A DNA stretch of 64,000 bases. Origin: Hyaloraphidium curvatum SAG 235-1 (taxonomy: Eukaryota; Fungi; Monoblepharomycota). This document shows, piece by piece, positions 11,232-36,577 of the stretch. Position 1 is the first letter of the stretch; each line of letters opens with the position of its first letter. The notes beneath the pieces are model-generated. The model ran no database searches, had not been told where the DNA came from, and saw nothing but the letters and a program-made list of their open reading frames with translations. The DNA is taken from the NCBI GenBank assembly GCA_025558095.1, contig JAIVFI010000043.1, positions 310,001-374,000 of the forward strand, given 5' to 3'. Both the position numbers and the translations under genes were made by a program.

Positions 11232-12776
11232 ATGGATCCGAAAGAGGAGACGACGACTGCCATTGCTATTGAGAACCCCGCTCCACGGAAATCCAGCATC
11301 CTGAGCCGGGCGGAATGGCTCGTTCTGCTTCCCGCTGCGCCCTCCCCGTTGCAAGCCATGTCCGGAGCTTCTCCCCCCGCAGACCCTGCGGCGGACCTGC
11401 GGAATGCGGATCCTCTTACACTTGATTCATTCACCTCTATTCTCTCTAAGTGGACGCCTTCGCTGGCGATCTCGGTCAGGGTTCAGCGCGCGACCGAACC
11501 TTGGGCTACAAGGCCCGTCCTTCGCGGGACGCTCCTGTACCTCGTCTTTGTGCCTCTACTGGCCGTGCCTTGGGTCTTCAATGACGGCAGATTCGGATCC
11601 GTTCAATTGGCCGTGGGAACGTCCACGCTGGCACTAGCTTTCTTCGCCAGCTCCGTTGGGATAACTCTGTTTGCTGTGTATCAAGCAGGTCTCAAAGTCA
11701 TGGGAAACTCTACGACCACTGTTAAGGTTGCTTCTCGGGACTATTCGTCTCACGGTGCCGCCGGTCTTGCGAGGTGGATCCAGCTGGCGTCCAAAGTGGG
11801 CTCCGATTCCGCGGTTACAGCCCTGCTGGGCCACAACTCTAAGGACGACTTGTGCCCGTGCCCCAATGTGCAATGTGCAGGGCGTCTGCCGCGCCGCGCT
11901 GATGTTCTTCGGATAGTGGATATGTCGTTCCGGCTTTCTTTGCTGACCTTTAGTGGGTTCTCGTACTTCTGGACGCCTCTAGTTTCTACAGGCATCGCCC
12001 AACGCACCTGGACGACGCCGTGGTCTGCCGTTTTCGGCGGGCTGACCGTCGCCGCCCTCTTGAACTTTGGATGGCCAGCGGCCTTGGTGCGCTTCTCGAC
12101 CAACGTTCCACTACTTCAGCTCTCCAACCGGATCGGATGCCGCGCCATGAAGCTTGCTTCGGAAGACATGCTCTGCCGCTACCGTCTCCTGATTGACACG
12201 GGTGCACAATGGACTCGTGGAACCACTTCGGAGCGGCAGCTTTACATGGACCTCCACATTCTCTTCACAAGCAGCTGGCGGCGCCGCATTCTTCAGTACA
12301 CCGCTAGCGTCGCAAATCTATTCGCTTCTTCTGTCAACCTCCTGATGGGTTTGATCAACATCGCTGCCTGTTCTTGCCTGCCGGCTTGCTTTCTCCTTTA
12401 CCTCGTTTATACGCTTGCGATGAATCTCATCGACCTCGTCAATGTTAGCGCGGCCAATGCGCAGATTTCAGACGTGCGCTCGCTATACGCGGATGTCTCT
12501 TCAGAACTCCGCGAGCTCCGCCGGATCGCCTATACGGCACCGTCCCGACCTGATCCAGATGTGATCGCCGCGTTGGAGGCCGACGCGGAAGTCCTGGGCT
12601 CCTACCTGGATGTCGACCGCTACCGCTTGAAGTTTCTTGGTTTCGTGATGACGTACGGCGTCGTCAGGACGCTATTCGCGACCCTTCTGACGCTGGGGAT
12701 TGGGCTCTGGTCCATTCTGAGGGGTTTGGGAGTTTTCGTCACGATGGAGACGATCTGTCCGATCGTGGGCCCGTGA
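11232..12776 (+). CDS. Intronless 7-TM protein, family member 1 (GR-like/7TMIC-like); start may be 11358
   Basis: Seven hydrophobic segments; motifs shared with 27622-29061 and 35105-36577 (DPAADLR, H-x5-CxC..CAG, FxGF...T...G...I.RG.G..T....CP). Confidence 0.8.
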   Translation: MDPKEETTTAIAIENPAPRKSSILSRAEWLVLLPAAPSPLQAMSGASPPADPAADLRNADPLTLDSFTSILSKWTPSLAISVRVQRATEPWATRPVLRGTLLYLVFVPLLAVPWVFNDGRFGSVQLAVGTSTLALAFFASSVGITLFAVYQAGLKVMGNSTTTVKVASRDYSSHGAAGLARWIQLASKVGSDSAVTALLGHNSKDDLCPCPNVQCAGRLPRRADVLRIVDMSFRLSLLTFSGFSYFWTPLVSTGIAQRTWTTPWSAVFGGLTVAALLNFGWPAALVRFSTNVPLLQLSNRIGCRAMKLASEDMLCRYRLLIDTGAQWTRGTTSERQLYMDLHILFTSSWRRRILQYTASVANLFASSVNLLMGLINIAACSCLPACFLLYLVYTLAMNLIDLVNVSAANAQISDVRSLYADVSSELRELRRIAYTAPSRPDPDVIAALEADAEVLGSYLDVDRYRLKFLGFVMTYGVVRTLFATLLTLGIGLWSILRGLGVFVTMETICPIVGP

Positions 12777-12887
12777 AAGATGTCGTCAAAGATGTAAAGG
12801 TTGATGAAATCGAACGCCTTTTGCGACCTACTCTTGGCAGTCACGGATGCGGAACCCCGATCGTCGCGCTCCGCGGAAGGACGAAAG

Positions 12888-13819
12888 ATGACGTTCAATC
12901 CCACGCTGACGGAGTCCTCCGCCGTCCTGAAGGACATTCTGGGCGGAGGACGCGAGTTTGCCGCGTCCGAGCTATGGAGCAAGCGGCCCGCCGTCGTCAT
13001 GGTACGGGCTGCGCAGCTTCTACGGGAGACAGTGCGATAACGAACCACGCGCCCGTTGCACCCTTGCTGCACGTTCCTCCGCTGCTTTCTCCTTGTTTCG
13101 ACTTGTGCTGCGGCTCGTGGTCGACGTCTCGAACGGCAGGTGGTTCGCAGGCCCGGCTGATTCCTGTGCAGGGAGGAGGCCCTCGGGCTGTCCTCCAGGA
13201 AAGCCGAGCTCGACAAGCTCGGCATCGACCTCGTGGTGCGTTGGCACCGGTCACCGCAAGTTGCAGTTGATTTGACGGACGCCACAGGCCGTGGTGCACG
13301 AAGACATGGGCGCCGCCGAGTTCAAGGACTACTCTTTCCGTGACTCGCCCGTCTATCTCGACACTACCAAAGCCTTCTACAGGTGCTTTCGACCCAGCAG
13401 ATGCTACTTGTGGGGCAGCATCTTACTGTTCGACGTTCAGGTTCATCGGTGCCGGTTCGCTGATTTGGGCGGACCCCTCGGACTTGACGTCCCCCGAGGC
13501 CAAGGTTCACGGTGATCGGGCGCGCGCCAAGAAGGTCAAGGGCAACATGAAGGGCGAGGGCAGGATCATGGGTGGCCTCGTCGTCGTCAACACCGCCGGC
13601 GCCATCTGTGAGTTCGCCACTCCGATTGCAGAGGCGATTGGTGCACTGACACGCACGCTGCAAGATATCTACAACGAGAAGATCTTCGGCGACCACGCGC
13701 CCCTGGGCGGTAAGTTGATCATCGCAGCAGTACTAGTTCGGACTCCAACGCAATCGCACATTGCAGAGGTGGCCGAGGCTGCCCGAATGCTCTCCTCGGC
13801 GCCCTCCGCCCGCCTCTGA
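12888..13819 (+). CDS. SELENOU: Selenoprotein U / FAM213A (PRXL2A)-like peroxiredoxin-fold selenoprotein, Sec codon at 13158-13160
   Basis: Spliced (intron 13002-13139) ELWSKRPAVVM|VVRRPG-UGA-FLCREEALGLSS; downstream exons VVHED..AEFK...VYLD..KAFY, GNMKGEGRIMGGLVVV, EKIFGDHA match the family; SECIS in 3' UTR. Confidence 0.92.
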
Positions 13820-13867
13820 AGCGCCTCTAAGGCGGTCCTTCTGCGTCTGCTGGCTTCAGCGACGGTC

Positions 13868-13953
13868 GGCTTTGTCAAGCAACATGATGGCTTCCGCGTA
13901 AAGCACCCTCTTCTCCGGAAGGCGTGGACAGCGTGATACAACAGCTTGAAGCC
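13868..13953 (+). promoter_or_regulatory. Eukaryotic SECIS element (type II-like)
   Basis: Helix I TCAAGC(13875-80)/GCTTGA(13944-49); ATGAT core 13884-88 opposite TGAT 13934-37; helix II GCTTCCGCGT/GCGTGGA(C)AGC; unpaired AAA 13900-02; apical mini-stem CTTC-TCCG-GAAG. Confidence 0.88.
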
Positions 13954-14095
13954 TCGATAGTCGTTGATGTAACCAAAGGAAAGCACTGGACTTGGAATAA
14001 GCACTCTCCCTTCACAAAGAAAGAATCATGTCATTTCAATGAGGTTTACACCGTGCCACAGACCAACTCCAGCCGTCCACAGCGGAGATCAAAGT

Positions 14096-15505
<1,410 letters not shown>

Positions 15506-15660
15506 TCAATCCAAAGCCATCCGCCGCCATTCTCCCGATCCTACATCGTGCATCGGCTTCTCCAAGTGCCGTTTAGCCATGTTGATGCCCTCTCGCGCCG
15601 GCTCAATGCAGGAGCACCCCGCGATCGCCCCTCGCACCCCCATCCATCCCCGTCTTCGCC

Positions 15661-17537
15661 CTAAGCATCGGCAGGCAGGTAAAGGAACTGACCCGCGATC
15701 GCCGCGGCGACGACGAGGATGATCGACACCTTCCCCCCCGCCGCCTTGAAAAAGTACAGGGATATGAGCGTGAGCACGTACAGCACCGCAGACACGCCGT
15801 TGCTGTTGACCGCCCCCAGCTTGTCCTCCGCCGTGGGCAGCCTCGGGTCCGACAGCTGCACGGTGACCGAGTACCGCAGCAGCTCCATGGCGACGACAGC
15901 GATCAGCCCCGTGACCGAGGCGGTGACGCCCTCGAGCGCGCTCTGGATGGGGTCCAGCATCACGAGCCACTCCCAAAAGTCGTGGCCGATGATGGTGAAG
16001 CTAAAGCAGGGGATGAACATGCCCAGCGTCATCAGGATGGCGCCGGCAAAGGCGTAGCCGAGGTTGCCGTTGTACCCGGCCAGGCCGCCCTGGAAGCCTA
16101 CAAAGGTGACGAAGATGACGAGCGGGGCGGGGATGACGTTGCCGATGGCGATGCCGTCGAGGAAGACCTGGTTGCTGAGCCATTTGCCGAGGACGACAGC
16201 TTCCTGCTGCACGAAGGGGATGGCGGTGTAGGCGCCGCCGAAGGAGAGGACCCCGGCGACGAGGCCGAGGGCAAAGAGGTGCCCGAGGTCCGGCGGGTTG
16301 GGCGCGATGCCGATCGCCAGCGAGTTGCGTCCGGGGAAGCCGCGCGTGGCCACGTAGGCGACGTAGCCGGCGATATCGGCGGCGATGATGACCCCCGCGG
16401 CGGCGTACCAGTAGTAGGCGTGCTTCTTGTTGCCGGCGGCCCACATGCCGTTGCCGCGGTCCCATAGGAACCACAGCAGGGCAAAGACACCGAGGGTGAT
16501 GAAGAAGTTGATGCGCAGGGCCGACTGCAGGAAGGAGGCGAGGGCCAGCCAGAAGAGGACATTGCTGAACTTTTTCGTGCGGTGCGAGTGGAAAGCGTGC
16601 TCGGCGATCTTGTGCACGGCGCGCAGAACGAAAGCCGCGACGACCGGCTGCAGGGCACGGAAGCTGGCGTTGACGTACCTGGCGGCAAGCTCGGGTTAGC
16701 TCACTGGCACGCCCGGGGAGACGACGCTCTTCTTGTGAAGTCCCCAAAGAACCACGCCCTCTTGCCCTTTGGCAAATTCGGAGAGCACAATCAAGTACTC
16801 ACACGTTGCTGAACCCGATCAGGTAGTAAATGTAACTCAGGAGGAGCATCAGGAAGAAACCCGGCAGGATGAACCCCAGCCCCGCGATCAGAGCGCCAAG
16901 CCGCCCCCTGCTCAGCATTCCGAAGTAGCAGCACAGCTCTGCCGCCTCGGGACCGGGCAGAACCTGGTACACCGCGTCTTTCCGGGGGTAAGAATCAGCG
17001 ACGGCTTGGCAGACTTCACATCGGAAGAAACCCACAGACCCGGTTGAACTTCTTGATGCTGATCCATTTCTCCTTGATCACCAGCTGCTCCTTCAGCATG
17101 GCGATCTGCGCCACCGGCCCGCCCCACGCACGAAGGCCGAACACCAGGAACTTCCCGAATAGCTCCAGCAGCCCGAGCCTGGGCGCATTGCTCGCCATCT
17201 CGTCCACCACCGGCGGCACCGCACCCGCTTCGGGGTCCACAGGAGGCGCCAGCGGCGCCGACGGCCCCCCGTTCGCCGGAACGTCGACCACGATGTCCTT
17301 CCCCTCGGCCTTGTCGGCCACGTCCAGCTCGACCCCCGGGCCGCCGTTCGCGGCGCCGGCATGGCGGCGGTGGTGCAGCCCCGCGCCGTCGGTCGCCGGG
17401 TCCGCCGCAGTCAGTGTCACGGCGTCCGCAGGGGTGTCGGGAACGGCGAGCGCGTCCGCGGCCGCGTCCGTGCGCGTCGTCCCCGAGCTGGGCGAGCCCT
17501 CGCGGGGGACGAGCGCGATGCCCTCGTCGGCGCTCAT
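15661..17537 (-). CDS. Chromate transporter (long-chain CHR/ChrA family)
   Basis: [56 protein letters not shown]; two CHR halves; introns near 17040 and 16800. Confidence 0.92.
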
Positions 17538-18060
17538 TTCGTCAGCCTGCGGCGTACGGCGAGCGGGAGATTGGTTGTTTCCCGGAAGTAGCTGGGACTG
17601 TTTAACGCCCGCAAAGCGAAATGGCGGCGGGGGCGCGATTTGCCCATGAGGATCCCGCATGGCGCCATCGACTCGCCGGCGGGTCCCAACTGGAAAATGC
17701 ATCGCCAGGCTGCCGGATGCGTGCAGACACCGTCTGAGAAGATTCAAAGAGAGGTTGGGGGGGCGGTGCTTGCGATGCGTTTCGGCATTGGGAGGTACGG
17801 ATGGTAGCATCGGAAGCCCCTTCATCCGAGGCTGCGGAAGGGCGATCGGGAAAGCATGGGGCGCGCGCGGAGCGGGGCAGGCTGGCAACTCTTCCCGTAC
17901 AGTCGATCTGCTGGCGGGTCACGCCATCGCGACGGAGGCTGGCGTGCAAAGAGGACGTCAAAAGCACGACAGCTTCCAGGTCCCCGCGGCCCCATGGTCC
18001 AATACGAAGTGGAATAACAACATCGCATTGCAGATCGACATTACGGGAGATAGCAAACCA

Positions 18061-19713
18061 TCACAGCTTCCCCTTCTCCCTCCCTTCCCCCTGCAGCAGT
18101 CCCAGCGCCCTCTCAAGCACCTCCGCCGCTCTTTCCCCCGGCCCCTCGCACATGACGCACCAATCCGGTCGCACAACCGCGACCCACCCCAGCGGCACCT
18201 TGCCCGGCAACACCGCACCGTCCAGCGCCTCGATCCTCGCCTCCGCGGGGCCGAGGTTGAGCGCCTGCGAGCGGTGGCAGTACTGCACCGCCCTGCCGCC
18301 CGCGGCTTCGAGGCGAGCAAGCAAGGCCGAGTCCACGACGGAGGCAGGGTCGACGCCGTAGCCGATCAGGCAGAGGGAAGGGCCGAGGGCGTCGTCGCTG
18401 AGGGTGGGGGTGGAGGAGGGGGAGGCGCGGACGTAGCCCTGTGGCACGGGGGCGCCGGGGACCAGCTTCGCCGTGCCGGTGCGCGCAAACAGTCCTTTCG
18501 GGAAGCTCGGCGCCGGCTTGATCTTGAGATCCTCGAAGTAGGACCGGGCGCCCGGGATCAGCAGCTGCGAGGCGGCGATGGTCCCGTGCACCGCGGCGGC
18601 GCCGATCCAGCTCGTGGGCATCACCACCGCGCCCATCATCCTGGCCAGGTTGATCATGGCCAGGGCGTGCGGCTGGCGCTCCTCGGTGTAGCTGTCCAGG
18701 ATGGCGGGGGAGGCGCGGCCGCGAACCACCCATGCGAGCTTCCACGCCAGGTTGGCGGCGTCGCGCAGGCCCGAGACCAGGCCCTGCCCGGCGAACGGGG
18801 GGGTGATGTGCGCGGCGTCGCCGGCGAGGAAGCACCGGCCCTTGGAGAAGGCGGGGGCGCAGCGCGCGTGGAACCGGTAGACGGCGGTGCGCTCGATGGT
18901 GACCTTTTCGGGGTCGTCGCAGAAGGGCGCGAGGAGCTTTTTGATGTTGTCGGGGCGCTCGAACTCCTCGCGGCTCTCGCCGGCGTGCAGCTTGAACTCC
19001 CAGCGCTGGCGGCCTTCGGGAGCGGGCATGTGCTGGCAAGGGCCTGGAGGTTAGCAGAGCTCGAGATCACAGAAGGTCACACTCACAGGCGTCGGCCTGC
19101 GAGGATCGCAGATGAACTCGATGTGGTTGCACGGCCTTCCGGGGTTGATGGCATCGACGATGAGCCAGTCCTCAGCGTAGGACTGCCCCGTGAAGTCGAG
19201 CCCGAGCGCGCGCCGGACGAACGAGTTGGCGCCGTCCGCGCCGACGAGGTACCGTGCCTGCACCTCGAACTCGTCCCCGTCGTCGCGGCGAAACGACGCC
19301 CTCACGCCGTCGCCGCGGTCCTCGAATCCCTCCAGGGTCGCGCCGAGCTCCACGCGCACCGACTGCTTCCCGGCGAGCTTCTTCCGGAGCAGCGCCTCCA
19401 GCTGCGGCTGCACGAAGGTGACCAGCGACGGGTGGCCGTCGACGATGGCCGACGTGTCGACGCGGGCAAACTGCCCGAATGCCGGCGAGATGTAGACGAC
19501 CTCGGGGATGCCGACGACGGGCAGCTCGCCGTCCTTGATCCCAACGAGCTGCAGGATGCGCAGCGCCTCGTTGTCGAGCGCGATGGCGCGCGGCTTGGGG
19601 AACACGGCGCGCGTCGCCTCGGCGACCACGACGGAGACGCCGTACGTCCCCAGGAGGTTGGCCAGCGCGGCGCCGACGGGGCCGAGCCCCACGATGAGCA
19701 CTTCGGTCTGCAT
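18061..19713 (-). CDS. FAD-dependent aromatic hydroxylase (MhpA-like), 1 intron
   Basis: VLIVGLGPVG (Rossmann), PRAIALDNE, YLVGADGANS, FLAGDAAHITPPFAGQGLVSGLRDAANLAWKL, VVRPD. Confidence 0.92.
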
Positions 19714-20170
19714 GTTCTGCGATGGGTGTCGGAGTTGAGGGCGGCGAGGCGCGCGGGCGGGGTCTTTGAGGGTGGGTGGGGGCAAGGCGTCCCCTTCCGT
19801 CACGCCACAGCCGCGGCACTTTCGGATTCAGCCCCGGCTGGGAGACGCGGCAGAAACACGTCGTGCGGTCCTCCACCGCCGCTGGGTCATTCCATGAGCT
19901 GGATTGGAGGATCTGCGAGCCTGCGATTGCCCGAGTCCGACCTTCTTCGTTGGCTTGAGTTGTTGCCGGCGAAGCGGAACCGCAATCCGCCGCAGATCAG
20001 GCCATCCGGAAGCTCTGTATCATCTTCTCAAAGATCCCGACGAGCACTTTGGATAAGCGGTGGAGCGGGATGTATGGCACCGGAAGGGCCGAAGCGAGGT
20101 GCTCGTGCGTGGATGGCGGTGAATTATCGATTACGTTACATTTTTCTGCAAGTCATGGGTATAAGAGCGT

Positions 20171-21547
20171 TCAGAGCAGCAGAACCATCCCGATCGCCGC
20201 GACCGCGAGCCCCGCGCCCGCGCCGGTGCGGCCGGCGGAGTTGGGCATCGAGGTGCTCGTGGGGCGGGCCGACGAGGAGGTGCTCGAGGCGGCGACCGAC
20301 GACGAGGCGATCGAGGCGGTGGTCGACGCCGGGGGAGGGGCGACGCTGCTCGTGGCGGCGATCGAGGTCGACGCGGGCGGAGGGGCGACGCTGCTCGAGG
20401 CGCCGGCCGAGGAGGAGGCGACGACGGGGGAAGAGGAGGCGGGGGCGTCGGTGGTCTGGCTCGCGACGGTGGTCTGCACCGCGTCCGTGGTAGTTGCGGG
20501 GATGCTCGTGGCCGCGGAGGAGGTGGCCGTAACCACCGTCAAGGTCGCCGAGCTTGCCGTCGCGGTCGCCGAGCTCGCCGTCGCGGCCGTCGAACTGCTC
20601 CCGTTGACCGCGCAGCCACACCAGAAACCGGCCGTCGGGAACCCGCAGGAGGTGCCGTCGGGCTTCTGACCCCCGGTGTAGCTTCCCACGTAGTCGCAAG
20701 ACGAGAGCCCGTCGCACTGCTGGCCGACGTTCACCGAGCTCGGGAAACATCCTCCCCATTGCCACGTGGCACCCTGAGGCGGCGGGTTCGGCGGGGTGTA
20801 GGAGGTGTTGAAGAGCCCAGAGGCGCAGAAGAGCCCCGTGGTGGTCGGGTCGCGCGAGGCACACGTCGTGGGGGTCTGGGGCACGCTGCCGGTCGACGGA
20901 GGGTCGTACAGGGTGAAGGGACCGACCCAGGGCTGCGCGATACGGTTGCACTGCTCGGAAATTGTGGCTTGGTCGGCGTTGGCGGGGACGCATCCTGTCC
21001 ACGTCCACGTCTGGTAGCTCGGGAGCGTCGGTTCGACCGGCCACTGCGTGACGCCGCACCACAGCGCGGTAGAGGTAGGCGCGGGGCAGGCGGTGGCGTT
21101 GGGCTGCTGCCCGTCGGTGCTGGTCAGGCCGGCGACGTGGTTGGCGCCGAACTTGTCCGAGCACGCCGCTTCAAAGTCCGTCGACGGCGCCACGCAGCCG
21201 ACGTAGCCCCAGCCGTCGCCCGAGGGCACCGGTTGGGAGGGGTAGTAGGTCGGCGTGAGCGAGCCCGTGGCGCACCACAGGCCCGTCGTGCCGGGGCGCG
21301 ACTGCGAGCACTGCACGGTCGGGTCATCGTAGAGCTGCCAGACGCCGACGTATTGGGTCGAATAGTAGCCGCAGGTCTGGTTCGCAGACGCGGGCGATGT
21401 GTCGGAGGGTTGGCAGCCGGCAAAAATCCAGCTCTGATAGGGTGGGAGGACGGGTGTCGGCGGGCCCGAGCGCCTGAACAAAGGTGCGGCTGAGGCGAAG
21501 GGGAGGAGCGCGGCCGCGGCGGCCGAGGCGATGAGTGTGGAGCGCAT
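20171..21547 (-). CDS. Secreted, probably GPI-anchored Cys-rich repeat protein with Ser/Thr stalk
   Basis: Signal peptide MRSTLIASAAAAALLPFASA; four W-x3-GC..C..C..(L/F)(W/F)C modules; S/T/A-rich tract; NSA-GR then hydrophobic C-terminus. Confidence 0.85.
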   Translation of the reverse strand: MRSTLIASAAAAALLPFASAAPLFRRSGPPTPVLPPYQSWIFAGCQPSDTSPASANQTCGYYSTQYVGVWQLYDDPTVQCSQSRPGTTGLWCATGSLTPTYYPSQPVPSGDGWGYVGCVAPSTDFEAACSDKFGANHVAGLTSTDGQQPNATACPAPTSTALWCGVTQWPVEPTLPSYQTWTWTGCVPANADQATISEQCNRIAQPWVGPFTLYDPPSTGSVPQTPTTCASRDPTTTGLFCASGLFNTSYTPPNPPPQGATWQWGGCFPSSVNVGQQCDGLSSCDYVGSYTGGQKPDGTSCGFPTAGFWCGCAVNGSSSTAATASSATATASSATLTVVTATSSAATSIPATTTDAVQTTVASQTTDAPASSSPVVASSSAGASSSVAPPPASTSIAATSSVAPPPASTTASIASSSVAASSTSSSARPTSTSMPNSAGRTGAGAGLAVAAIGMVLLL

Positions 21548-22997: not shown

Positions 22998-24107
22998 ATG
23001 GCCTCCCTCCTCACGCCCACCTGGCGCGCGACCTTCGACGAGGGCTTCCCCGCCGAGGACGTCGGCACCGTGCACATCGCGCCCGCGGCGGACGCGCTCA
23101 CCTTTGCCCGCGCGGGGGACACGCTGCTCGGCGTCGTCGCCTACGAGGCGGGGACGGTGAAGGCGGTCGACCTGACGAAGAGGTTCGGCGCCGGGGACGC
23201 GGTGGAGGTGTTCAACAGGGAGGGCTACGCCAAGATCGAGGAGGCCGTCTCCAACGTCGCGGCCGACGATCTGGTCGAGGTCCCCGCCGCGGACCTCGGC
23301 CTCGCCGTCGACTTTGCCGGCGCCCACGTCGCGGTGGGGACCAACTACCCCGAGCACGCCAAGGACGCCGGCACCGTGCGCCCCTTCCTCTTCCCCAAGC
23401 TCGGCCTCCCCCTCCCCTCCGGCTCGACGGTGGGCGTGCGCGGCGGGCTGCTGGACTACGAGGCCGAGCTCGCGCTCGTCACCCTCCGCCCCCTGCGCGT
23501 CGGCCAGGGGCTGCCGGAAAGCGTGGGCCTGGTCCTGGCCAACGACTTCACGGACCGCGACCTGCTCTTCCGCTCCCTCGACCCGCGGGACATCCTCTCG
23601 GGCAAGGGCTTCACCACGGGCAAGAGCGCGCCCGACTACCTCCCCGCCGGCAACCTCCTCGTCGTCCCGCGCGACTTTCGGTCCTTTATCCCCACCCTCG
23701 AGCTCCGCCTCTACGTGAACGGCAGGCTGCGGCAGCGCGCCCCCTGCTCCGAGATGGTCTGGTCCGCCGACGAGATGCTCCGCCAGGCGCTGGCCCTGCA
23801 GGGCCGCACGTGGTCGCACCGCGGGCAGCAGGTCCCGCTGTTCCCGGGCGACGCCGTGCCCGAGAGGACCATGGTGCTCACCGGCACCCCGCACGGCACC
23901 GTGTTCCAGGGGCTCCCGCCCGCCGTCATGCTCCGCGGGCTCGCGGGGTTCCTGATGGGCGGGTTCCTGTGGCAGGGGCCGATGGGCTGCGCGATCGATG
24001 CGTACGGGGATGCGGCGAGGACCGGGGGGTGGTACCTCAAGGCGGGGGACGAGGTGAGGGTGCACGTGCACGGGTTGGGGGAGCTGCTGAGCTTGGTGGT
24101 GGAGTGA
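22998..24107 (+). CDS. Fumarylacetoacetate hydrolase family protein, intronless
   Basis: VGTNYPEHA, PFLFPK, LDYEAEL, LANDFTDRD, GKS, VLTGTP.G, YLKAGDEV. Confidence 0.92.
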   Translation: MASLLTPTWRATFDEGFPAEDVGTVHIAPAADALTFARAGDTLLGVVAYEAGTVKAVDLTKRFGAGDAVEVFNREGYAKIEEAVSNVAADDLVEVPAADLGLAVDFAGAHVAVGTNYPEHAKDAGTVRPFLFPKLGLPLPSGSTVGVRGGLLDYEAELALVTLRPLRVGQGLPESVGLVLANDFTDRDLLFRSLDPRDILSGKGFTTGKSAPDYLPAGNLLVVPRDFRSFIPTLELRLYVNGRLRQRAPCSEMVWSADEMLRQALALQGRTWSHRGQQVPLFPGDAVPERTMVLTGTPHGTVFQGLPPAVMLRGLAGFLMGGFLWQGPMGCAIDAYGDAARTGGWYLKAGDEVRVHVHGLGELLSLVVE

Positions 24108-27141: not shown

Positions 27142-27285
27142 AGTCGCAGGCCATGTACCGTTCCCACCTCCGGAGCACATCATCGCCCACGCGCTCGGCA
27201 AACGGCGCGGCACAGTCCGGTCCATGGTCCGCAGCTGCACGCGGACCTCGACGCCGGCGGAATATGCGGCGCGACCGAGGTTGTT
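27142..27285 (-). pseudogene. Degenerate fragment paralogous to the F-box-like gene at 30327-31736
   Basis: Aligns with 30891-31035 (SAGVEVRVQLRTMD..VGDDVLR.W.RYM.CD) with a 1-nt frameshift after TMD. Confidence 0.75.
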
Positions 27286-27621
27286 CTCTCGGCGGCGGCG
27301 CCGCCGGCTTCGAGCTGGATAGTGCCGACCTCGGCACCCCGCCGGCACGACCATCTTCGCGGCCTCCGAGGAACCCCCGCGGAGCTTCGTCACGGTGCCC
27401 AAGGAACGGTTGAATCACGTGATGACCGTCTCCGGGGAGCCGCATGAGGCGCTCAAGAGCGCGGGGGGGATGGGTGCACTTTGCGACCCGCGCGGTGGTG
27501 ACGTGTTTTCGGTGGGAAGCATCACCTTTTGCGGCGGCCTGTGGGACGGGAAGGGGTTCAGTGGCGGTATGTCGAGGATGCTCAAGAACGTGGTGAGTCG
27601 GTTCGGGGGGTTGGAGGGCCG

Positions 27622-29061
27622 CTAAACCGGGCAGAAAGCCTGCAGCGTGACCGACGCCCCCGCCCCCCTGAGAATCCCAAAAAGCCCCACGCCCACGGTG
27701 AGCCCCGTGGCCAGCATCCCCCTGAACAGCGGCAGGTCCACCGGGAACCCCGCGAAGCGCGCCAGGTCCCCCGCCGTAGCCGCCTCGAACCGCTCCAGCA
27801 GCCGCGCCTGGGCCAGCAGCCAGTCGGCGTCTGCGGGGGGCGGGGACCGCGCGCAGGCGGCGAGGAGGGCGTTGCGGGCGCGGCGGTACAGTAGGGCAAG
27901 GGAGGAGAGGCCGGCGTTCGATGCCGCGGCATCGGATAGGAAGCGCACGGCGACGACGACGTAGAGGCCCGCGGCGCCGATGAGGTAGGCGGGGATGCAG
28001 CCGGACCCTATCAGGGGAACGAGCGAGACGATGCAGAGGGCAAAGATGAGGATGAACACCGAGCGCGTGACCGCGTCCGTGGCGTCCCTGATCGTCCGCA
28101 GGGCCGGCGCCAGGCCGCGGTGCACAGACATCCACGGTTCCGCGGCGCCCTCGGCGGCGACGACACCGGCGGCGGAGCAGCGCGCGACAAGGGGGGCCAG
28201 CGCCAGTCTGACGGCCCTGTGGCGGATCCGTGCTTCCAGGTCCAGCAGCGCCAGGTCCGAAGGGATCGTCTCAAAGTACACCGCGAAGTGCACAATCACC
28301 TGCCCGAAGATGTTCCACGCAACGAGAAGGGCTTTACCAGGGTTTGACCACGTCGTCGTAGCGAGAGTGACAGCGTAGGTCCACTGGAAAAGCAGCCCCC
28401 ACACGGCCGTGCCCGGGACGAGAAGCAACAACGCGGACGCGAGCTGCAGTCTGCCCGACTTCCGCCCTACGTCGCCCGCGCATCGGGCAGCGGGGCAAGG
28501 GCACATGGGATCGCCTTCCTCGTGTGCAATCCACGGTCCGCCCGGGGCCGCGTACGGGGAGGTCCCTTCAACATGAGCAGGGGCCAGGGAGGCCCACCGA
28601 ACATACCCCGCCATGGGGTGCCGGTCGAGCGTGCGCCAAGCGGTGCGAGCGACGTCGAATCTCGCCGGGACGGCGAGCTGCACCACGAGCAGGAAGATTG
28701 CTGCGGCGCTCGCGCCGGTGGCGACCCCCCGCGTGGAGAAAAGGCCCGAAGCGAGCAGATCGGGGATGAACACAAACGGCTCCGCCACCATCGGCACCGT
28801 GGCGACCAGGAGGCGCAACAGCGCCCGCTGGTTGACAAAGGGCACGTACGGCTCCAGCGCAAACACGGCACGCTGGAAGGGCAGGTGCCTGAAGGCAGAG
28901 AAAAAGTCGGAGCGGGTGAGCGGGGCCGCCTTGCGGGCGGCGCTCGCGGGGTCGTCCTCGGCGGGCTCGTCGGGCCACAGCGGGGCAGCCGGCTGCGTGG
29001 GAGCCGGGAGCAGGGCCAGCCACACGTCGGGGGGCGGCCCGGAAGCAAAGCGCGGTTCCAT
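27622..29061 (-). CDS. Intronless 7-TM protein, family member 2 (GR-like/7TMIC-like)
   Basis: HEEGDPMCPCPAARCAG, GSGCIPA, AASNAG, RFAGFPVDLPLFRGMLATGLTVGVGLFGILRGAGASVTLQAFCP. Confidence 0.8.
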   Translation of the reverse strand: MEPRFASGPPPDVWLALLPAPTQPAAPLWPDEPAEDDPASAARKAAPLTRSDFFSAFRHLPFQRAVFALEPYVPFVNQRALLRLLVATVPMVAEPFVFIPDLLASGLFSTRGVATGASAAAIFLLVVQLAVPARFDVARTAWRTLDRHPMAGYVRWASLAPAHVEGTSPYAAPGGPWIAHEEGDPMCPCPAARCAGDVGRKSGRLQLASALLLLVPGTAVWGLLFQWTYAVTLATTTWSNPGKALLVAWNIFGQVIVHFAVYFETIPSDLALLDLEARIRHRAVRLALAPLVARCSAAGVVAAEGAAEPWMSVHRGLAPALRTIRDATDAVTRSVFILIFALCIVSLVPLIGSGCIPAYLIGAAGLYVVVAVRFLSDAAASNAGLSSLALLYRRARNALLAACARSPPPADADWLLAQARLLERFEAATAGDLARFAGFPVDLPLFRGMLATGLTVGVGLFGILRGAGASVTLQAFCPV

Positions 29062-29214
29062 CGCAGGGTGGCACGTTCTGCGTATCTGGGCGGGAGACTG
29101 TCACTCGCCGACCAGCGCTGCTCCGAGAAATTCGATTGGATTATAAGGGTCCTTCCGCCGTGCCCTTCTATCGCCACTGCCTCCCACTCAAACGAGCAAC
29201 GCCAGAGGCGCAGA

Positions 29215-30248
29215 ATGGCCCGCAGCAGCATCTCCGGCTGGTCTGCCCTCGTCACGGGTGGCTCCATGGGAATCGGCTTCGAGTGCGCAAGGGCTCTTGT
29301 CCGCGACGGTTGCACCGTCACCCTGGTGGCCCGTCGGCCCGACCGCCTCGCGCAGGCAGTCGAGCTGCTGCAAAAGGAGGCGCCCGAAGGGACCGGCGTG
29401 TTCTCGGTCGAGTGCGACGTCACGGACGAGGAGACGGTAAAAGGGGCTGTGCGTGCAGCTTTCGTGAACGGGGGGGACAAGCTCCACGTCGTCGTGCACA
29501 GTGCCGGCGGCTCCAGGATCCAAGACGGAGATGCGATGCTGCTTCCACGGATCTCCTTGGAGGGGTGGAAGGCGAGTTCCCAATCGCACCACGCGGAATC
29601 AGGTGGAGCTCAAGCCTGTAGAGTAGTACATGCTGGACCTCAACGTCACCTCATTCTTCCTCATCGTCAAGCATTCTGCACCCTACCTTGCCAGAACCGC
29701 TGCATCCTTAGCGGTCGGCACGCCCCTGAGGCCCCCAACGACGTCGATAGTAGCCATATCGAGCGTGAACTCGGTGAGGACGACCAAGTACCACGGCTCC
29801 TACGCCGTGACAAAAAGTGCGGTCTGCGCGACGGTCAGAGCTGCCGCTGCGGACCTGGGATCTTATGGAATTCGAGTGAACTCGGTTATGGTGGGCTGTG
29901 GAAAGTAGCTTGTCTGCGGGCTTCTGTCAACTAATCCGCGATCCCCGGGTCGTTTAGCCGGGACTCATGCCGACAGAGCTATCTGCACCCTTCCTCGGCA
30001 CCCCCCTTTTCAGGTCGTACACCGACAACCAGATCCTCAAACGCGTCGGGGACGTCGGCGACCCGGCGGACCTCGTGCGGTTCCTCGCGGGACCGGAGAG
30101 CAGCTGGATTACCGGCGAGTCCATCTCGGTCGATGGAGGGCAGCACGTATACGGCGGGGGCGTGCCGGAGGACTGGGAACTGTTCTTGGGAGAGATCTTT
30201 GGGGACGCGGCCAAGGACAGGATCACGATGCCCGAGATCGAGCCTTGA
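29215..30248 (+). CDS. Short-chain dehydrogenase/reductase, 2 introns
   Basis: LVTGGSMGIG, VECDVT, VHSAG, ISS, YAVTK, GIRVNSV|PG, SWITGESISVDGG. Confidence 0.92.
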
Positions 30249-30326
30249 ACGGCAACTAGACTCCCTATAGGCACCGATTTTCTCTAGAGTATGTGCCGCA
30301 AGCAACGCTAATTTGGACGCCTCAGT

Positions 30327-31736
30327 TCATGTCCTTGGCCAACGACGGGATCGAAACGAAACGCCGCGCATCCCGCCGCCGATCTCGCACGCTTTTACCG
30401 ATCCCGTGCCCGGACCGCCGCCGCCCGCGGCCGCGTGCTCCCGGCCGCACAGCACCAGCTCCTCCAGGCCGTCCGTCGACAGCACGATGTGCTCGGCGGC
30501 CTGCAGCACCCCGATGCACTCGAGCAGCCGGATCCGCTCTACCGGATCGGCGGCGGACCACTCCACCCGGTGCTTGCCCGGTCGGCGAGAAAGAGATCCG
30601 CGAAGGCGACCGACGGAGCTCTTCCGCGAGGCGCGCGACGTCCTGCGCGGTGGTCGTCGGGCCGATGGATACCTGGTGGATCCGCAGCGTCTCCAGCCCT
30701 GGCCAGAGCCGCACCTGCGCGAGGTCGCCGCCGAGGCACTGCAGGTTCAGGTGCCGCACGGAGCCCAGCCCCGCGAGCTTTTCGAGGCACTCGTCATCGG
30801 TCGAAAGATAGGCCCAGTCGTCGTCCTAAGCCACCTCGATCGCCGCCGGCCGGAACGAAGTGCGGTCGCAGAGGTGCCACAGCAGGGCCCAGTCGCAGAC
30901 CATGTACCGGTCCCACTTCCGGAGCACATCGTCGCCCACGCACTTGACAAACGACTTGGCGCGGTCCGAATCCATGGTCCGCAGCTGCACGCGGACCTCG
31001 ACGCCCGCGGAATGGGCGGCGCGGCAGAGGTCGTTGACGATCTCCCCGACGGCATTCCCCCGCAGAAATAGCTTGGCGAGCTTGGGCGGGAGGGTGAGGT
31101 GGTCCAGGCAAAGATGGCCGGGATCAAAGTCCGAGGCCGCGAGCACGAGGTCTTCCAGCCCGGCGAGCGGGAGAGAGAAGAGAGCCTCGACGTCGGCGAG
31201 GGAGTGGACGCAGAGCTCGAGGCGCCGGAGGTTGCCAAAATTCCCCACGAAATGGCTGAGCATGCCGGCATTGAACTGACCAGCATCGTCGGGAACGAAC
31301 ATGGTCCGTACGGCCCGGGCGTGCGAGCCGTTTGCCAGGCTCCACGCGCGAGAAAGGTATTCGAACGAGTTGCAGTACCAATCGCCTGAATCGATTTTGG
31401 CCACCAAGAGCGGACCGAGGAGGCGGTAGCACGCCTTCGACGACCTGGCCAACCGGAGCAGCGTCCTCGGTCACGGTAACAGCCGAGGAACTCCGCCACG
31501 CGCAGCAGCAGCTCCGGCGGCAGCCTCGGCCTCTCCTCGCCGTCTCCGGCCGGCAAAGAATCGGCGGTTGCGTCCAGATCCACCGGCAAGGGCAGGTCCG
31601 CCCGGGCCAGCGCGGCCTGGAGCCGGGCGGCCTCGCGCTCGAGCGCCGCAACGCGCCGGCGCAGCGCCGCGCGGTCCTCTTCGGCGGCGACCAGCTCCCG
31701 TCTCAGGGCGCGGCATTCGCACGGGACGGACGCCAT
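30327..31736 (-). pseudogene. Coiled-coil + F-box-like protein, disrupted
   Basis: RLPPELLLRVAEFL then frameshift (~31470) into RTLLRLARSSKACY; in-frame TAG at 30826-28; further frameshift near 30575. Confidence 0.7.
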
Positions 31737-31958
31737 GGCGGCAAGGGGCGGAAGGCGCCTCGAAGGCGAGGTTGCGTGCGGGCGCGTGGTGTGGGGCGTG
31801 GGTCCCGCAATAGCGCGCGATTTCGGTCATCCGCCGGAATCATCTTCTGGCTCGCCCGACGGGGGCCGGCAAGCTTAACCCGTACACCTGAACAACAGCT
31901 GGAAGCTGGGTGAGCCAGTGGGCCCGATGGCAGACAAGTCGGGGTGAGCATCCACGAC

Positions 31959-33508
31959 TCACGCCCCCGCGCCGGCCTTTGCCCTCGATTTCGCGTCCTT
32001 TGCTGGCGCCTGCGGGCGGGACGTCTGTCGGCCCCGAGCTCCCCCGCCCCGCGGGACGGCGCACCCACCCCGACCTTGCCCCGCAGGCACTCCTGCACCT
32101 TTGCGTTCTCGGCGTTCCTGTCGAACAGCTCCGCGTAAAAATCGGCCATGCGCTCGGCATAGTCCGCGATCAAGCGCCGGAAGTCGTCCGTGAACCGGTA
32201 CCGGGTGAGCGTGTCGATCGCGTTCTTCTTGGTGTCCTGCTTGGCCAGCTGGAAGTCGTTGCGCTGCGGTGCGCGCTCTGACGCGGGGGCCGGGGTGGGG
32301 GGGGAGGGGGGGTGGTGGGGCTGGTGAGATCGGGGAGGCCGCCGGCGCTGCTGCATGCGGGGCCTCACTCTTATCGTTGCACGCCTTAACCGTTTCGCGC
32401 TTGGCCGGGGCGCCGATGTTGACCTCCTTGGGGCTCTTGTCAAGGATGTAGGTCAGGCATATGGAGTCGAACGCGGCCCTCAGGGCGCGGCCCCTCGTGC
32501 GGGCAAAGGTTGACCGAAAGGACCATTCGGCGTTGAGGAACTCGATGTTCTCGGCCGAGTACTCGGTGCGGGCGTACTCGAGGAAGTCGGCGTTCATGAC
32601 CTGGTCGCTGAGGAGGAGGTTGACCAGGGGTTTCAGGCTCTCGGTGACTGCCGCGAGCGAGGTTTCCTCGTCCACGTCGGTGACAGACTTTGGGCATTGC
32701 GGCGAGGGAAGTTTGCTTCCCGGATCGCACCGCGTGCCGGGACGGCCCACCTGGAGACAAGTGTACCGGTCCTTCGCCGTCAGCAGGGTCTTGGCGTGCC
32801 GGATCACCGTCTGCTCGAACCGCTTCTCAAAGTCATCGATGAGCTTGGCGGCACCCTTTGACTTTTTCCAGTTGGCCACCTCGGCGAGGAATGTCTGGTC
32901 CCGCTTGATGTGCCTGGTGGCGGCGCGGAACGTGTCCGCGGGGGCATCGAAGCCTTCCGCCGTCACGGCATCGGTGATTGCAGTGCGAATGGCGTCGGGA
33001 ACGCTGATCTTCTGCCTCGCGTCGTCGGAGACGTAGGTGTTATAGATCCGCTGGGCCCATTCGACGTGCTCAGCGAGCGCCTCTGCGTCCTGGCGGTCGA
33101 CCTTGGCCACCCTCCACGTTGAGAAAGTTGTAAGGGGCGCACATGGACGGCCGCGCGCTGCGAATGCAGGGCGCCATCAGTTCGGGGGCGGACGGAACCA
33201 GCGAACCCTGCCTGCGGGGCCGCGCACCAGACAAAGTCCCCGAAGCTCGCCGACAGCGTCATCTCCGACAGGATCGTGTTAACGAGGTCCTTCCCCGTGG
33301 CCTTGAGCCCCTGCCCTCCCGAAACGGCGACGGTGGTCGTGCCGACGCCCGATGCGTGCTTGGTCGCGTCGGCGTTCTTGGTTTGGCCGCCGCCGCCGCG
33401 CTGCCCGGACCGCCCGCGACCGGCATCCTCCGCGCAGAGCGCGCCGCGGAGCGTGAGGGACAGCAGCGCGAGCAGGGCGAGGAGGGGCACCGGCCGCGTG
33501 CGCGCCAT
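31959..33508 (-). CDS. Tandem RGS-domain protein with N-terminal signal peptide (first exon junction unresolved, possible frameshift)
   Basis: FLEYARTEYSAENIEFL...ICLTYILDKSPKEVNI (RGS); second degenerate RGS AQRIYNTYVSDDARQKISV; N-terminus MARTRPVPLLALLALLSLTLRGALCA. Confidence 0.72.
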
Positions 33509-33987
33509 TGCTGGTTTCCGGGCGGCTTTTGGGTGCCGCGACTCGGGAGGACCCTGAAAGTAGATGTGCCATTCACACTCACGCATCATCCTCCGACGTT
33601 CCACAGACTCCAGCTCTCGGCTCTCGGTTTTCAGAGTCCCCTTGCCGGACCTCCTGGCGGGATTCGTAGGCACGGGCCATGGGAGGAGCTAGCGGCAAGT
33701 AATGAATTTCACCGCCACGAGACGCGCGCCCTTTGCAAAGCTCGCTACTTGGAATCCCCGCTGGCTTGGTGCAGTGATCCCGATGCTTCAGATGATGGTT
33801 GAGTTTGCCCCCATCTTGCCAGGCCGGGATGCCGCCCGGGCCTAAGCGGCGCTGCTGTGTTTGGACCGGCGTCCAAAAGCCCCGGATCCGACCCCTACAG
33901 GCGCCCTTCCGAGTCATGGATCCCGTAGGAGTTCGGTCGTCTGTAGCTCGATGGGATTGGATATCGTACAATGGCCGAAGCCATCCG

Positions 33988-34863
33988 TCAACCCGTTGAC
34001 CCGATCACTTTCTCGAACCACGCCCACATCTCGCCCTCGGTCCGCGGATCGTACCTGTGCCCGAAGCCCCCGACCTCCCGTGTCGTCACCTCGGCTCCCC
34101 ACGCACGGAGCACCCTTGCGGCATCCCTGCTCCCCGGCGCCGCCCACCGGTCCTCCGATCCCCACGCCAGGAACACCGGAGGCAGTTTGTCCGGCAGCCC
34201 GGCCGGCTTGGCGTCCTCCCGGCCCCAACCATCGTCCCACGCGCCCATCCAGGGGCACGCCGCCGCCGGCGGATAACCCCCGGGCGCGTAAGTGGCCGGG
34301 TCCGCGAGGACGTTCATCGCAAACAACGCCCCGTTGGACAAGCCGAGCACCAGCGTCCTGTTCTGATCCGCGCGCACCTCGCGTTCGGGCGACGACAGTT
34401 CCGCCATCAGCGCGCGGTGGAACCGCAAATCGGGGTTGCGGGAATGGGAGCCCGCGTGCGTCGAGAACCACCCCGCCTTGCCGTACCGCTCCTTGAACTC
34501 GTCGCTCGAGTCAGGGAACGCCAGGATGAATTTGTGGGACGTCGACATGGCGGCCCACCCGGTCTCGGCGAGCATGTAGAAGGCCGAGCGCGTCATCCCG
34601 TGGTACGCAATGACGAGAGGGTGCGCGCCGGGGGGCAGAGGAGGGTGGTAAACGAGGGCGCGGCGCGAGCCGATGTTCAGGGTTTGGAGGCCGGGCAGCG
34701 CGGGGCAGTCCGGGGGCGGCGCGGGCGCGTCGGAGGACCGCGGATTCGCGGACGGCGCGTCGGGGGGGACGGGCCGCGATGCCGCGGGCGCGGGCGGCGC
34801 CGGCGCGTACAGGAAGAGGAGGAGCCAGCAGATCGCGTTGAAGAGGAGGAGCGGGAGCTGCAT
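33988..34863 (-). CDS. Alpha/beta-hydrolase (PHB depolymerase / feruloyl esterase-like) with N-terminal signal or anchor
   Basis: PLVIAYHG, FILAFPDS, nucleophile elbow GLSNG, WGSEDR, GGFGH; intronless. Confidence 0.82.
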   Translation of the reverse strand: MQLPLLLFNAICWLLLFLYAPAPPAPAASRPVPPDAPSANPRSSDAPAPPPDCPALPGLQTLNIGSRRALVYHPPLPPGAHPLVIAYHGMTRSAFYMLAETGWAAMSTSHKFILAFPDSSDEFKERYGKAGWFSTHAGSHSRNPDLRFHRALMAELSSPEREVRADQNRTLVLGLSNGALFAMNVLADPATYAPGGYPPAAACPWMGAWDDGWGREDAKPAGLPDKLPPVFLAWGSEDRWAAPGSRDAARVLRAWGAEVTTREVGGFGHRYDPRTEGEMWAWFEKVIGSTG

Positions 34864-35104
34864 GACACGACCGCGCATGGGCCTAAACACCCCGACGCTT
34901 CGATCGCGCGAGGGCGTCGATCGCGTTCTACCTGGAACATCGACACTCGAACCCCGCCGGCATTTGGGAATCGGGCTTGGCCGCCTCTGGCCTACTGCTC
35001 TCGGCATCTTTTGTCTGTGGCCCTGTCTCCGAGGTCGTTTTCGAATGGACGCGAGAGAACTGGGCGCCGAGATTCCGGCCCCGGCGACCATCCGCTTAGG
35101 ACAG

Positions 35105-36577
35105 ATGTCCGCAAGCCAACGCGCCACTGCCGGCGATGTTAAGGCCGACGAGCCGGCGGCGTTCGGCGACTACGAGTGGCTCGCACTTTTCCCGTTCGTC
35201 GTTGGCCCGTCGGTGCCGCTCGCCGATGGTCCGCCGCCACCGGATCCGGCCGCTGACCTCCGCGCGCTGAAGCCGCGGGACCTCAAATCGCTCCTCACCG
35301 CATGCAAGGAGGCGCACCGGCCTTTGATCGGCATTCTGCTTCGCGCGTACGCTTCTCTGTTCCTGGGCGACTTTGCGGCGCAGCTGTTGGGTATGATTCT
35401 GCGAGTTCCGGCCGTGGCTGCCGCGCTCGTCTTGGCAGCAAACAGCACTCGGTATTCGGCGCGGAATTTGTGGCTCGGGGGCTTTGCGGTCGCCGTCCAA
35501 CTTCTCTGGGGACCCGCAGTCTCCTTCAGCCATCAGTTGCGGAACGCTCGCGCGCTGTTCAGGGGGAGGCACAAGACTTTTGTCGACAACGCAGTATCCA
35601 GTTTCAGTGTCGCCAACATGTTTACTTGGTCCTTGCTGACTAAGCAGCGGCCGGACTCACCGCTCCTGGCGCACCGCGAAGCGGATGATGCGTGCACGTG
35701 CCGAACCTGTGCCGGGGACGTAAACCGAGTCGACGCTTTGTCGCGTTTCGTCGACCTCTTTTCCAATGGCATAATCCACATCCTTATCGTTCCGTTCCTG
35801 CTTTGGACACCGGCCGTTGCGTTTGCATCCTCCTTCTGGTCGACACCGTGGGCAATGGCCGCCGCGCTCTGTCTCATTTCCCCGCTGCCCTTGATCTGGC
35901 AGACTCTGGGCCGCGTTCTCAACTTCCCTGGCCTCCCAGCGCTGCACTACGAGTCCCGGCTGCGGGTCCGGGCATCGACGTTGGCCCTCGATGACCTGCT
36001 CGCTCGCTACCGCCGGCTCGTCCCCCTTGGTGCAACCCCGGAGCACCCTCAGCGAGAACCCTATCTTGACCTCTGCCGCACTCTCTCCGGCTACTGGTCC
36101 TCCACCGGTCGCTTCGCGCCCACCCTCATCCGATCCTACGTCATCGCCCACGTCTGCGCAATCGTGCTCTGCTTCGTCCTCAACGCCGCCGCGGGATGCA
36201 TCACGGCCTGGCAGCTAGCCGCGCTCGCCTACTTTGTCGCCTTCACCTCGAGCGTGCTCGTCAACGTGGCGGCGCAGAATGCCGGGGTCACTTCGATCAC
36301 CGAGCTCTGGGCCCGAGCCCAAGGCGCGCTGCGGGCGCTGGCGCTCGAGTGTGGGCCCGGAGAACCAAGGACCGCCATCAGGGACCACGACCGCGTGCTG
36401 GCGGGGTTCGTGGACAGGGGCCGGCTGTTCCGTGCCAAGATGTTCGGCTTGATTGTGGACTTTGGCCTGCTGAGGGCGCTGGCAGCCACGGCAATCACGA
36501 TTGCCGTCGGTCTCTTTGGTATCTTTAGGGGAGCGGGGCTCAGGATCACCTTGGAAACCTTCTGCCCAGCGGGGTGA
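35105..36577 (+). CDS. Intronless 7-TM protein, family member 3 (GR-like/7TMIC-like); start uncertain
   Basis: DPAADLR, HREADDACTCRTCAG, AAGCITA, AAQNAG, KMFGLIVDFGLLRALAATAITIAVGLFGIFRGAGLRITLETFCP. Confidence 0.8.
   Translation: MSASQRATAGDVKADEPAAFGDYEWLALFPFVVGPSVPLADGPPPPDPAADLRALKPRDLKSLLTACKEAHRPLIGILLRAYASLFLGDFAAQLLGMILRVPAVAAALVLAANSTRYSARNLWLGGFAVAVQLLWGPAVSFSHQLRNARALFRGRHKTFVDNAVSSFSVANMFTWSLLTKQRPDSPLLAHREADDACTCRTCAGDVNRVDALSRFVDLFSNGIIHILIVPFLLWTPAVAFASSFWSTPWAMAAALCLISPLPLIWQTLGRVLNFPGLPALHYESRLRVRASTLALDDLLARYRRLVPLGATPEHPQREPYLDLCRTLSGYWSSTGRFAPTLIRSYVIAHVCAIVLCFVLNAAAGCITAWQLAALAYFVAFTSSVLVNVAAQNAGVTSITELWARAQGALRALALECGPGEPRTAIRDHDRVLAGFVDRGRLFRAKMFGLIVDFGLLRALAATAITIAVGLFGIFRGAGLRITLETFCPAG

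Follow-up and report, generated by a model that had tools for sequence, protein, structure and literature searches.

The window analysed here is a 64,000-nucleotide stretch of DNA from the fungus Hyaloraphidium curvatum SAG 235-1, positions 310001-374000 of contig JAIVFI010000043.1 (C43) within a 31.9-Mb assembly, and its GC content is 59-74%. It carries three open reading frames (ORFs), each ATG-initiated, single-exon and without internal stops (Table 1), that encode members of one family of proteins with seven transmembrane (TM) segments and show pairwise identities of 26-27%. The preliminary description of this DNA recognized three intronless paralogues in these ORFs, as we do, and saw in them a resemblance to gustatory-receptor-like channels of the 7TMIC superfamily, which holds the odorant receptors (ORs) and the taste, or gustatory, receptors (GRs) of insects, the animal gustatory-receptor-like proteins (GRLs) and the plant DUF3537 proteins (10.1101/2023.08.30.555482; PMC7746228). 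Predicted structures give strong support to a 7TMIC fold, and a profile derived from the three genes picks out at least 91 places in the genome, with E-values down to 1e-241 and 90 of the 91 free of internal stops; the same profile search scored 86 of 808 first-look candidates.

The database proteins closest to the window genes are all entered as 'hypothetical protein DFJ74DRAFT_...' of H. curvatum. The deposited model of gene 3 starts at the same Met (35105) and comprises 307 aa, residues ~95-278 of the ORF having been removed as an in-frame intron, and with them TM1-TM4 and the His/Cys motif that is described below. Across the family the skipped part stays in frame and is conserved, which makes the full ORF the likelier product and the deposited model probably a mis-annotation. 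Gene 2 is absent from the 150 best library proteins of a HMMER search, and it may lack annotation or have been absorbed into another cluster.

Table 1. The three family genes of the window and their principal features (positions count from the first letter of the window; TM7b is the second of the two helices of the split TM7).
Feature	Coordinates	Strand	Remarks
Family gene 1	11232..12776	+	514 aa, one exon; identical to a deposited 514-aa H. curvatum protein (P0003)
Gene 1, loop 2-3 motif H-x6-C-x-C-x4-C-A-G	11832..11882	+	residues 201-217, predicted cytoplasmic
Gene 1, TM7b and C-tail signature, C-P at end	12639..12761	+	residues 470-510
Family gene 2	27622..29061	-	479 aa, one exon; 742 bits against the family profile
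Gene 2, motif H-x6-C-x-C-x4-C-A-G	28474..28524	-	residues 180-196
Gene 2, TM7b and C-tail signature	27628..27750	-	residues 438-478
Family gene 3	35105..36577	+	490 aa from Met at 35105; frame open upstream to 34673
Gene 3, motif H-x6-C-x-C-x2-C-A-G	35672..35716	+	residues 190-204; non-helical, modelled confidently (pLDDT ~94)
Gene 3, loop 5-6 with Cys365 (98% conserved)	36191..36208	+	predicted extracellular; one of two short model strands
Gene 3, TM7b (453-476) and C-tail with Cys487-Pro488	36446..36568	+	most conserved helix of the family

The family extends far beyond the window. The HMMER search, run against 1.84 billion representative proteins (50%-identity clusters), returned 449 matches at E<=1e-3, 405 at E<=1e-10 and 280 at E<=1e-30, and all ten of the clusters that were sampled, spread over the top 150, proved to be singleton H. 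curvatum proteins. At the DNA level, a loose pattern for the Cys motif stood out too little from background (428 sites; control 205), and a strict pattern for C-P-C-x4-C-A-G was used instead, which matched 181 sites against 5 in the reversed control. Because 40% of the 150 best members carry this exact motif, 181 strict sites imply ~440 copies. The family thus comprises ~400-450 copies, mostly single-exon and so far seen only in H. curvatum; by estimate, this is probably a few per cent of the genes of a 32-Mb genome.

Copies tend to lie near one another. Seventeen of the 80 within-contig gaps between strict-motif sites are shorter than 10 kb (5.5% expected; P = 1.4e-6), and the flanks of 5 of the 30 loci that were fetched hold further, partial family copies. 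These second, partly covered copies lie within 1.5 kb of the paralogues at L012, L014, L015, L019 and L025, often on the opposite strand. On contig C10, the motif DNA is the same at the strict-motif sites 809001 (+) and 813168 (-), which points to an inverted duplication of recent date.

The preliminary description had inferred a large lineage-specific expansion from the presence of three copies in 25 kb. The expansion itself is borne out by the copy number and by the sampled members, all of them from H. curvatum, but the local cluster says less than was implied. Given a density of ~440 copies, three in 25 kb has a chance of roughly 5% per gene and is therefore just mildly unusual, and the three genes are not sisters. 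Each has a relative with 50-58% identity on another contig (C24, C41 and C42), nearer than the other two window genes, to which it is ~30% identical in this comparison, and the common ancestor of the three spans the whole 129-tip tree, so recent tandem duplication was rejected as the origin of the window copies.

The family copies have the marks of genuine genes under purifying selection. Against their nearest paralogues, the proportion of nonsynonymous differences (pN) is 0.29-0.34 and that of synonymous differences (pS) 0.61-0.69, with synonymous divergence near saturation, and GC content by codon position follows the order third, first, second (GC3 > GC1 > GC2).

Hydropathy averaged over 23 paralogues resolves seven hydrophobic segments, which in gene 3 fall at about residues 90-110, 122-142, 215-237, 250-272, 342-362, 366-388 and 452-478, with long loops of 60-70 aa after TM2, TM4 and TM6. 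Over 129 near-full-length members, the set used also for the residue frequencies below (numbering follows the protein of gene 3), loops 2-3, 4-5 and 6-7 average 74, 72 and 65 aa, and loops 1-2, 3-4 and 5-6 average 9, 20 and 4 aa, with a C-tail of 14 aa. Positive charge is distributed in the same manner: the mean number of Lys plus Arg is 9.0 in the N-terminus and 7.7, 9.0 and 8.0 in loops 2-3, 4-5 and 6-7, as against 1.0, 0.5, 0.1 and 0.5 in loops 1-2, 3-4 and 5-6 and the C-tail. By the positive-inside rule this fits an N-in, C-out topology, and the N-in orientation assumed in the preliminary description is sustained as a prediction.

The predicted structures add detail to this plan. In AlphaFold2 (AF2) models of genes 1 and 3, the loops after TM2, TM4 and TM6 are helical. 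By DSSP assignment, gene 3 has a helix at 277-308 after TM4 and another at 319-333 that runs into TM5 (339-363), TM6 is a single helix at 368-415, and TM7 is split into TM7a (420-441) and TM7b (453-476) around a break at 442-452. Gene 1 is modelled alike, with helices at 292-323 and 337-380, TM6 at 385-435 (48-51 residues in the two models), TM7a at 442-457 and TM7b at 475-498. The features that define a 7TMIC have been listed by Himmel et al. 2023 (10.1101/2023.08.30.555482), and those seen here are seven helices packed as in ORs, a predicted N-in/C-out orientation, short outer loops, cytoplasmic extensions of TM4-6 and a split TM7. Structural alignments begin at model residues ~55-75, paired with OR residues 1-12, so that the helices at 60-83 may correspond to S0, an N-terminal re-entrant TM0. 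No OR counterpart is stated for another conserved helix, which lies at 22-28.

Conservation is concentrated in a few places. In loop 2-3, His190 (98%), Cys197 (98%), Cys199 (99%), Cys202 (98%) and Gly204 (81%) make up a His/Cys3 motif; the preliminary description gave it as H-x5-C-x-C-x(2-4)-CAG, and the motif is indeed shared by all three window genes, with the correction that the first spacing is H-x6-C in each. The other shared elements it listed, namely a Cys in loop 5-6, an Asn after TM6 and a tail signature, recur throughout the family at ~91-98%: Cys365 and Asn392 at 98% each, and in the tail Gly448 at 97%, Arg457 at 95%, Thr465 at 97%, Arg475 at 91%, Gly478 at 93% and Cys487 at 97%, followed by Pro488 at 76%. 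Asp194 of loop 2-3 and Arg285 and Arg289 of the cytoplasmic helices also belong to the 91-99% class, and Pro30, next to the conserved N-terminal helix, stands at 95%. TM7b, which bears Arg457, Thr462, Thr465, Gly469, Arg475 and Gly478, has the consensus R-T-L-x-x-T-x-x-T-x-x-V-G-L-W-G-I-L-R-G. All this is set in a family whose median identity is 30%. Column by column, the best conserved parts are TM7b (0.61), the His/Cys loop (0.58), loop 5-6 and the C-tail, and the least conserved are the membrane parts of TM1-6 (0.23-0.36); the difference between anchor plus TM7b and TM1-6 has P = 4.5e-10. A conserved pore and anchor combined with a variable ligand-binding bundle has been described for insect ORs and other 7TMICs (10.1101/2023.08.30.555482).

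The fold assignment rests on comparison of the two models with solved structures. The gene 3 model was built from a 23-sequence paralogue alignment and reached a mean predicted local distance difference test score (pLDDT) of 86.3 and a predicted TM-score (pTM) of 0.86; that of gene 1 was built from 44 sequences (pLDDT 90.1, pTM 0.89). When each was aligned exhaustively to 48,161 Protein Data Bank (PDB) cluster representatives, OR/GR chains alone took the top ranks, eight for one model and seven for the other, in co-linear alignments of ~300-347 residues that run from before TM1 to the end of TM7b. The next matches span just ~140-270 residues of soluble helical bundles, mostly onto the cytoplasmic bundle. 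Foldseek likewise placed eleven OR/GR chains first for the gene 3 model (E 0.02-0.14, TM-score 0.26-0.47), with a probability of 0.99-1.0 for BmGr9, AgamOR28 and MhOR5. In the ESM Atlas, the nearest structures belong to unnamed cnidarian (TM-score 0.58/0.70) and echinoderm (0.57/0.65) clusters, and there are further matches to a chlorophyte membrane protein (0.56) and to an arthropod 7tm_7 gustatory receptor cluster (0.47/0.49). Among the neighbours proposed by a protein language model, that echinoderm cluster comes up again, and so does plant DUF3537 (score 0.93, 193 shared features). The case for a 7TMIC fold is thus strong, as far as models can make it, and the resemblance first noted from the DNA is supported. 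Homology to 7TMICs is probable and not proven, because the models depart from OR/GR structures by large root-mean-square deviations (5-6 Å), and the arrangement of helices can by itself give a helical model a high score.

The remainder of the window has a varied content. A polyubiquitin gene at 14096-15047 (-) (Pfam ubiquitin, E 3e-55) sits in a tandem repeat of 3.2 units, 291 bp each and 87% identical. With 228 bp taken up by the ubiquitin coding unit, 63 bp are left over in each, and they point to a short intron or spacer per repeat. An ORF at 22998-24107 (+) encodes a fumarylacetoacetate hydrolase C-terminal domain (E 6e-22), and the stretch from 22 to 28 kb, with 70-74% GC, is filled with long overlapping ORFs on both strands without a Pfam match. 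Between family genes 2 and 3 lies an RGS-domain ORF (31959-33110, -; E 3.6e-13). Two ORFs of family-like length, 37719-39209 (-) and 42144-43640 (+), were rejected as members, being Arg-rich spurious frames. Farther along are a long ORF at 44393-46498 (-), in which a protein kinase domain begins after many ankyrin repeats (E 2.5e-71), and an ORF of 1070 aa at 54214-57426 (+) with an RVT_1 reverse transcriptase domain (E 5e-10), probably a retroelement.

We consider it reasonably probable that the family is a sequence-orphan branch of the 7TMICs that acts as a diversified repertoire of ligand-gated channels, that is, of chemoreceptor-like proteins. The main reason for favouring a diversified receptor-channel repertoire over a housekeeping role is the pattern of conservation, in which TM7b and the anchor are conserved and TM1-6 are variable. 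Subunits would insert N-in and form tetramers held together by TM7a and the conserved extensions of TM4-6, with TM7b lining a central cation pore; a ligand would bind within the variable TM1-6 bundle and open the pore, and the binding pocket would differ from one paralogue to the next. The family-specific His/Cys3 loop between TM2 and TM3 may bind a metal, probably Zn, on the cytoplasmic side, and a structural or regulatory Zn site fits in that the loop would lie in the reducing cytoplasm and is non-helical yet confidently modelled. Both models contain a pair of short strands, 365-367 and 480-482 in gene 3 and 382-384 and 502-504 in gene 1, and since the strands of loop 5-6 and the C-tail probably pair, an extracellular disulfide between Cys365 and Cys487 is plausible. 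The composite picture, in which a non-motile, early-diverging fungus possesses a repertoire of insect size, with ~400-450 ligand-gated 7TMICs that have their own His/Cys3 metal site and disulfide and are invisible to sequence search, is a more tentative proposition, to which we would give somewhat less than even chances.

Several observations weigh against this interpretation, most of them at the level of sequence. Pfam offers nothing relevant for the three window proteins or for 23 members up to E<=10, and a sequence profile search of the PDB at E<=10 gave merely one chance match of 40 aa and no solved OR/GR chain. The hidden Markov models PF08395 (7tm_7) and PF12056 (DUF3537) have zero matches in the six-frame genome, a weak negative because 14 control genomes were likewise blank and there was no positive control. 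The TM7 motif that defines animal GR/GRL proteins, T-Y-h5-Q-F (PMC7746228), is absent, the TM7b consensus having no Y, Q or F at the motif positions, so that the caveat attached to the preliminary description, that this signature is not conserved and homology unproven, still holds: there is no sequence link at E<=10. Foldseek was noisier with the second model, that of gene 1. Lastly, H. curvatum is non-flagellate and non-motile, and the purpose of hundreds of chemoreceptors in such an organism is not obvious. Two other searches have little bearing on either side: word-indexed protein searches, whether started from gene 3 or from the alignment, returned two H. curvatum proteins each and, with low-complexity words filling the candidates, were uninformative on other species, and a metagenome scan with a single protein found no relative.

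The rival that survives best keeps the 7TMIC fold, and with it the same fold evidence, and assigns the family a non-chemosensory role: self/non-self or mating-type-like recognition, antiviral or antiparasite defence, or a place in internal membranes as scaffolds or as channels that are constitutive or stress-gated. Non-motility makes classical chemotaxis unlikely, and the family-specific cytoplasmic His/Cys3 loop suggests a regulation unlike that of OR/GRs. Non-chemosensory 7TMICs are also on record, such as the early-development GRLs that Nematostella and sea urchin have, and LITE-1, which senses light (PMC7746228). Against this, variable TM1-6 with a conserved TM7b and anchor point to many specificities with one conserved output, and many deeply diverged copies are a hallmark of receptor repertoires. 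Although these data do not separate ligand sensing from the other recognition roles, we regard a non-chemosensory role as unlikely overall. Less probable still, to the point of being a minor concern, is convergence, in which an unrelated seven-helix bundle (a transporter, enzyme or scaffold) merely aligns with 7TMICs. It would have to account for OR/GR chains standing alone at the top for both models, co-linear over ~300-347 residues where unrelated structures align over ~140-270, for the co-occurrence of split TM7, extended TM4-6, N-in topology and long inner and short outer loops, and for the agreement of the Atlas arthropod 7tm_7 cluster with the language-model match to DUF3537.

It is very improbable that the copies are decaying, transposon-borne or chance ORFs, as might be feared in a genome of 60-74% GC with many long spurious ORFs, in a window that holds a reverse-transcriptase ORF and in a family of which a few copies are split or carry a stop; the uninterrupted frames, a pN well under pS, the order of codon-position GC, about a dozen residues conserved at 95-99% over 129 copies that are otherwise ~30% identical, and AF2 confidence of 86-90 all contradict it, although carriage by a mobile element, for which no search for a shared flanking repeat was made, is rejected less strictly. 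That the proteins are G-protein-coupled receptors (GPCRs) of N-out topology, as seven TM helices and the RGS-domain ORF between genes 2 and 3 might suggest, was rejected, with almost no weight left to it, on the structural alignments of both models, in which GPCR or other folds did not lead and only OR/GR chains align at full length, and on the N-in charge pattern.

If the family is indeed a repertoire of ligand-gated 7TMICs, its significance would be considerable. Up to now, the 7TMICs on record from non-animals have been single genes or members of small families, none with a known function (PMC7746228), and the H. curvatum set would far exceed any repertoire yet reported from them. Explosive diversification in clusters, as is typical of insect ORs and GRs, would then not be confined to animals, large expansions of 7TMICs of the chemoreceptor type would have arisen independently outside them, and microbial 7TMICs could serve as a combinatorial sensory system. 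A culturable microbe becomes available for asking what non-animal 7TMICs sense, with single-exon genes that are easy to clone for electrophysiology and cryo-EM (electron microscopy), and the invariant His/Cys3 loop provides a concrete hypothesis of a regulatory metal site, which mutagenesis could test. The family illustrates, too, that structure prediction can place what is invisible to Pfam and BLAST.

Knowledge of 7TMICs in fungi has been sparse. The 2023 preprint widened the superfamily to all domains of life by structure screens, its fungi being Chytridiomycota and Blastocladiomycota only (10.1101/2023.08.30.555482), and a search of the accessible literature found no paper on gustatory-type receptors in Hyaloraphidium or on such an expansion. 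Benton et al. 2020 described one GRL in each of two Spizellomyces species (SpunGRL1 and SpalGRL1), six GRLs in Thecamonas, six in Vitrella, and plant DUF3537 families of 4-12 genes (PMC7746228). Like the H. curvatum family, the Spizellomyces GRLs come from an early-diverging fungal lineage, are 350-500 aa long with seven TM segments, an intracellular N-terminus and longer inner loops, and have largely lost the TM7 motif (one of four positions remains). They differ, in a comparison made by description, in numbering one per genome as against ~400-450, and BLAST searches that started from animal GRLs had uncovered the unicellular GRLs, a kind of sequence link that the H. curvatum family lacks.

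DUF3537 (PF12056) of plants and algae offers a parallel of another kind, as a 7TMIC branch that was recognized mainly through structure and whose TM7 motif is unrecognizable; besides the language-model neighbour, the chlorophyte match in the Atlas (0.56) belongs to this comparison. Its families are small, its model is blank in this genome, and its long loops are the third and second intracellular loops (IL3 and IL2), whereas those of the H. curvatum family include IL1. An enlarged first intracellular loop, joining TM2 to TM3, is found together with a 7TMIC core in the PHTF-like Class-B 7TMICs (10.1101/2023.08.30.555482); compared by description, the IL1 of H. curvatum is distinct in having just ~70 aa and its own His/Cys3 motif.

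The best structural matches, and the sole ones at full length, are the insect ORs and GRs (Orco, MhOR5, AgamOR28, AaegOR10, BmGr9, Gr43a and Gr64a; 7tm_6 and 7tm_7). Unlike these, the fungal family lacks detectable sequence similarity and the TY..QF motif, and its channel role is a prediction from models. Its N-terminus is ~60 residues longer and includes a conserved E-W-L-A-L-L-P helix, its TM2-TM3 loop, of ~70 aa, is longer too and holds the invariant H-x6-C-x-C-x(2-4)-C, and there is an invariant Cys in loop 5-6 and in the C-tail; its genes are single ORFs, without the conserved 3' introns of animal GR/GRL genes. What the two share is the whole architectural plan, with seven helices, a predicted N-in orientation, short outer and long inner loops, extended TM4-6 and a TM7 split into TM7a and TM7b, and likewise the manner in which they have evolved, with TM7b conserved and TM1-6 variable in a large, clustered and rapidly diverging gene family.

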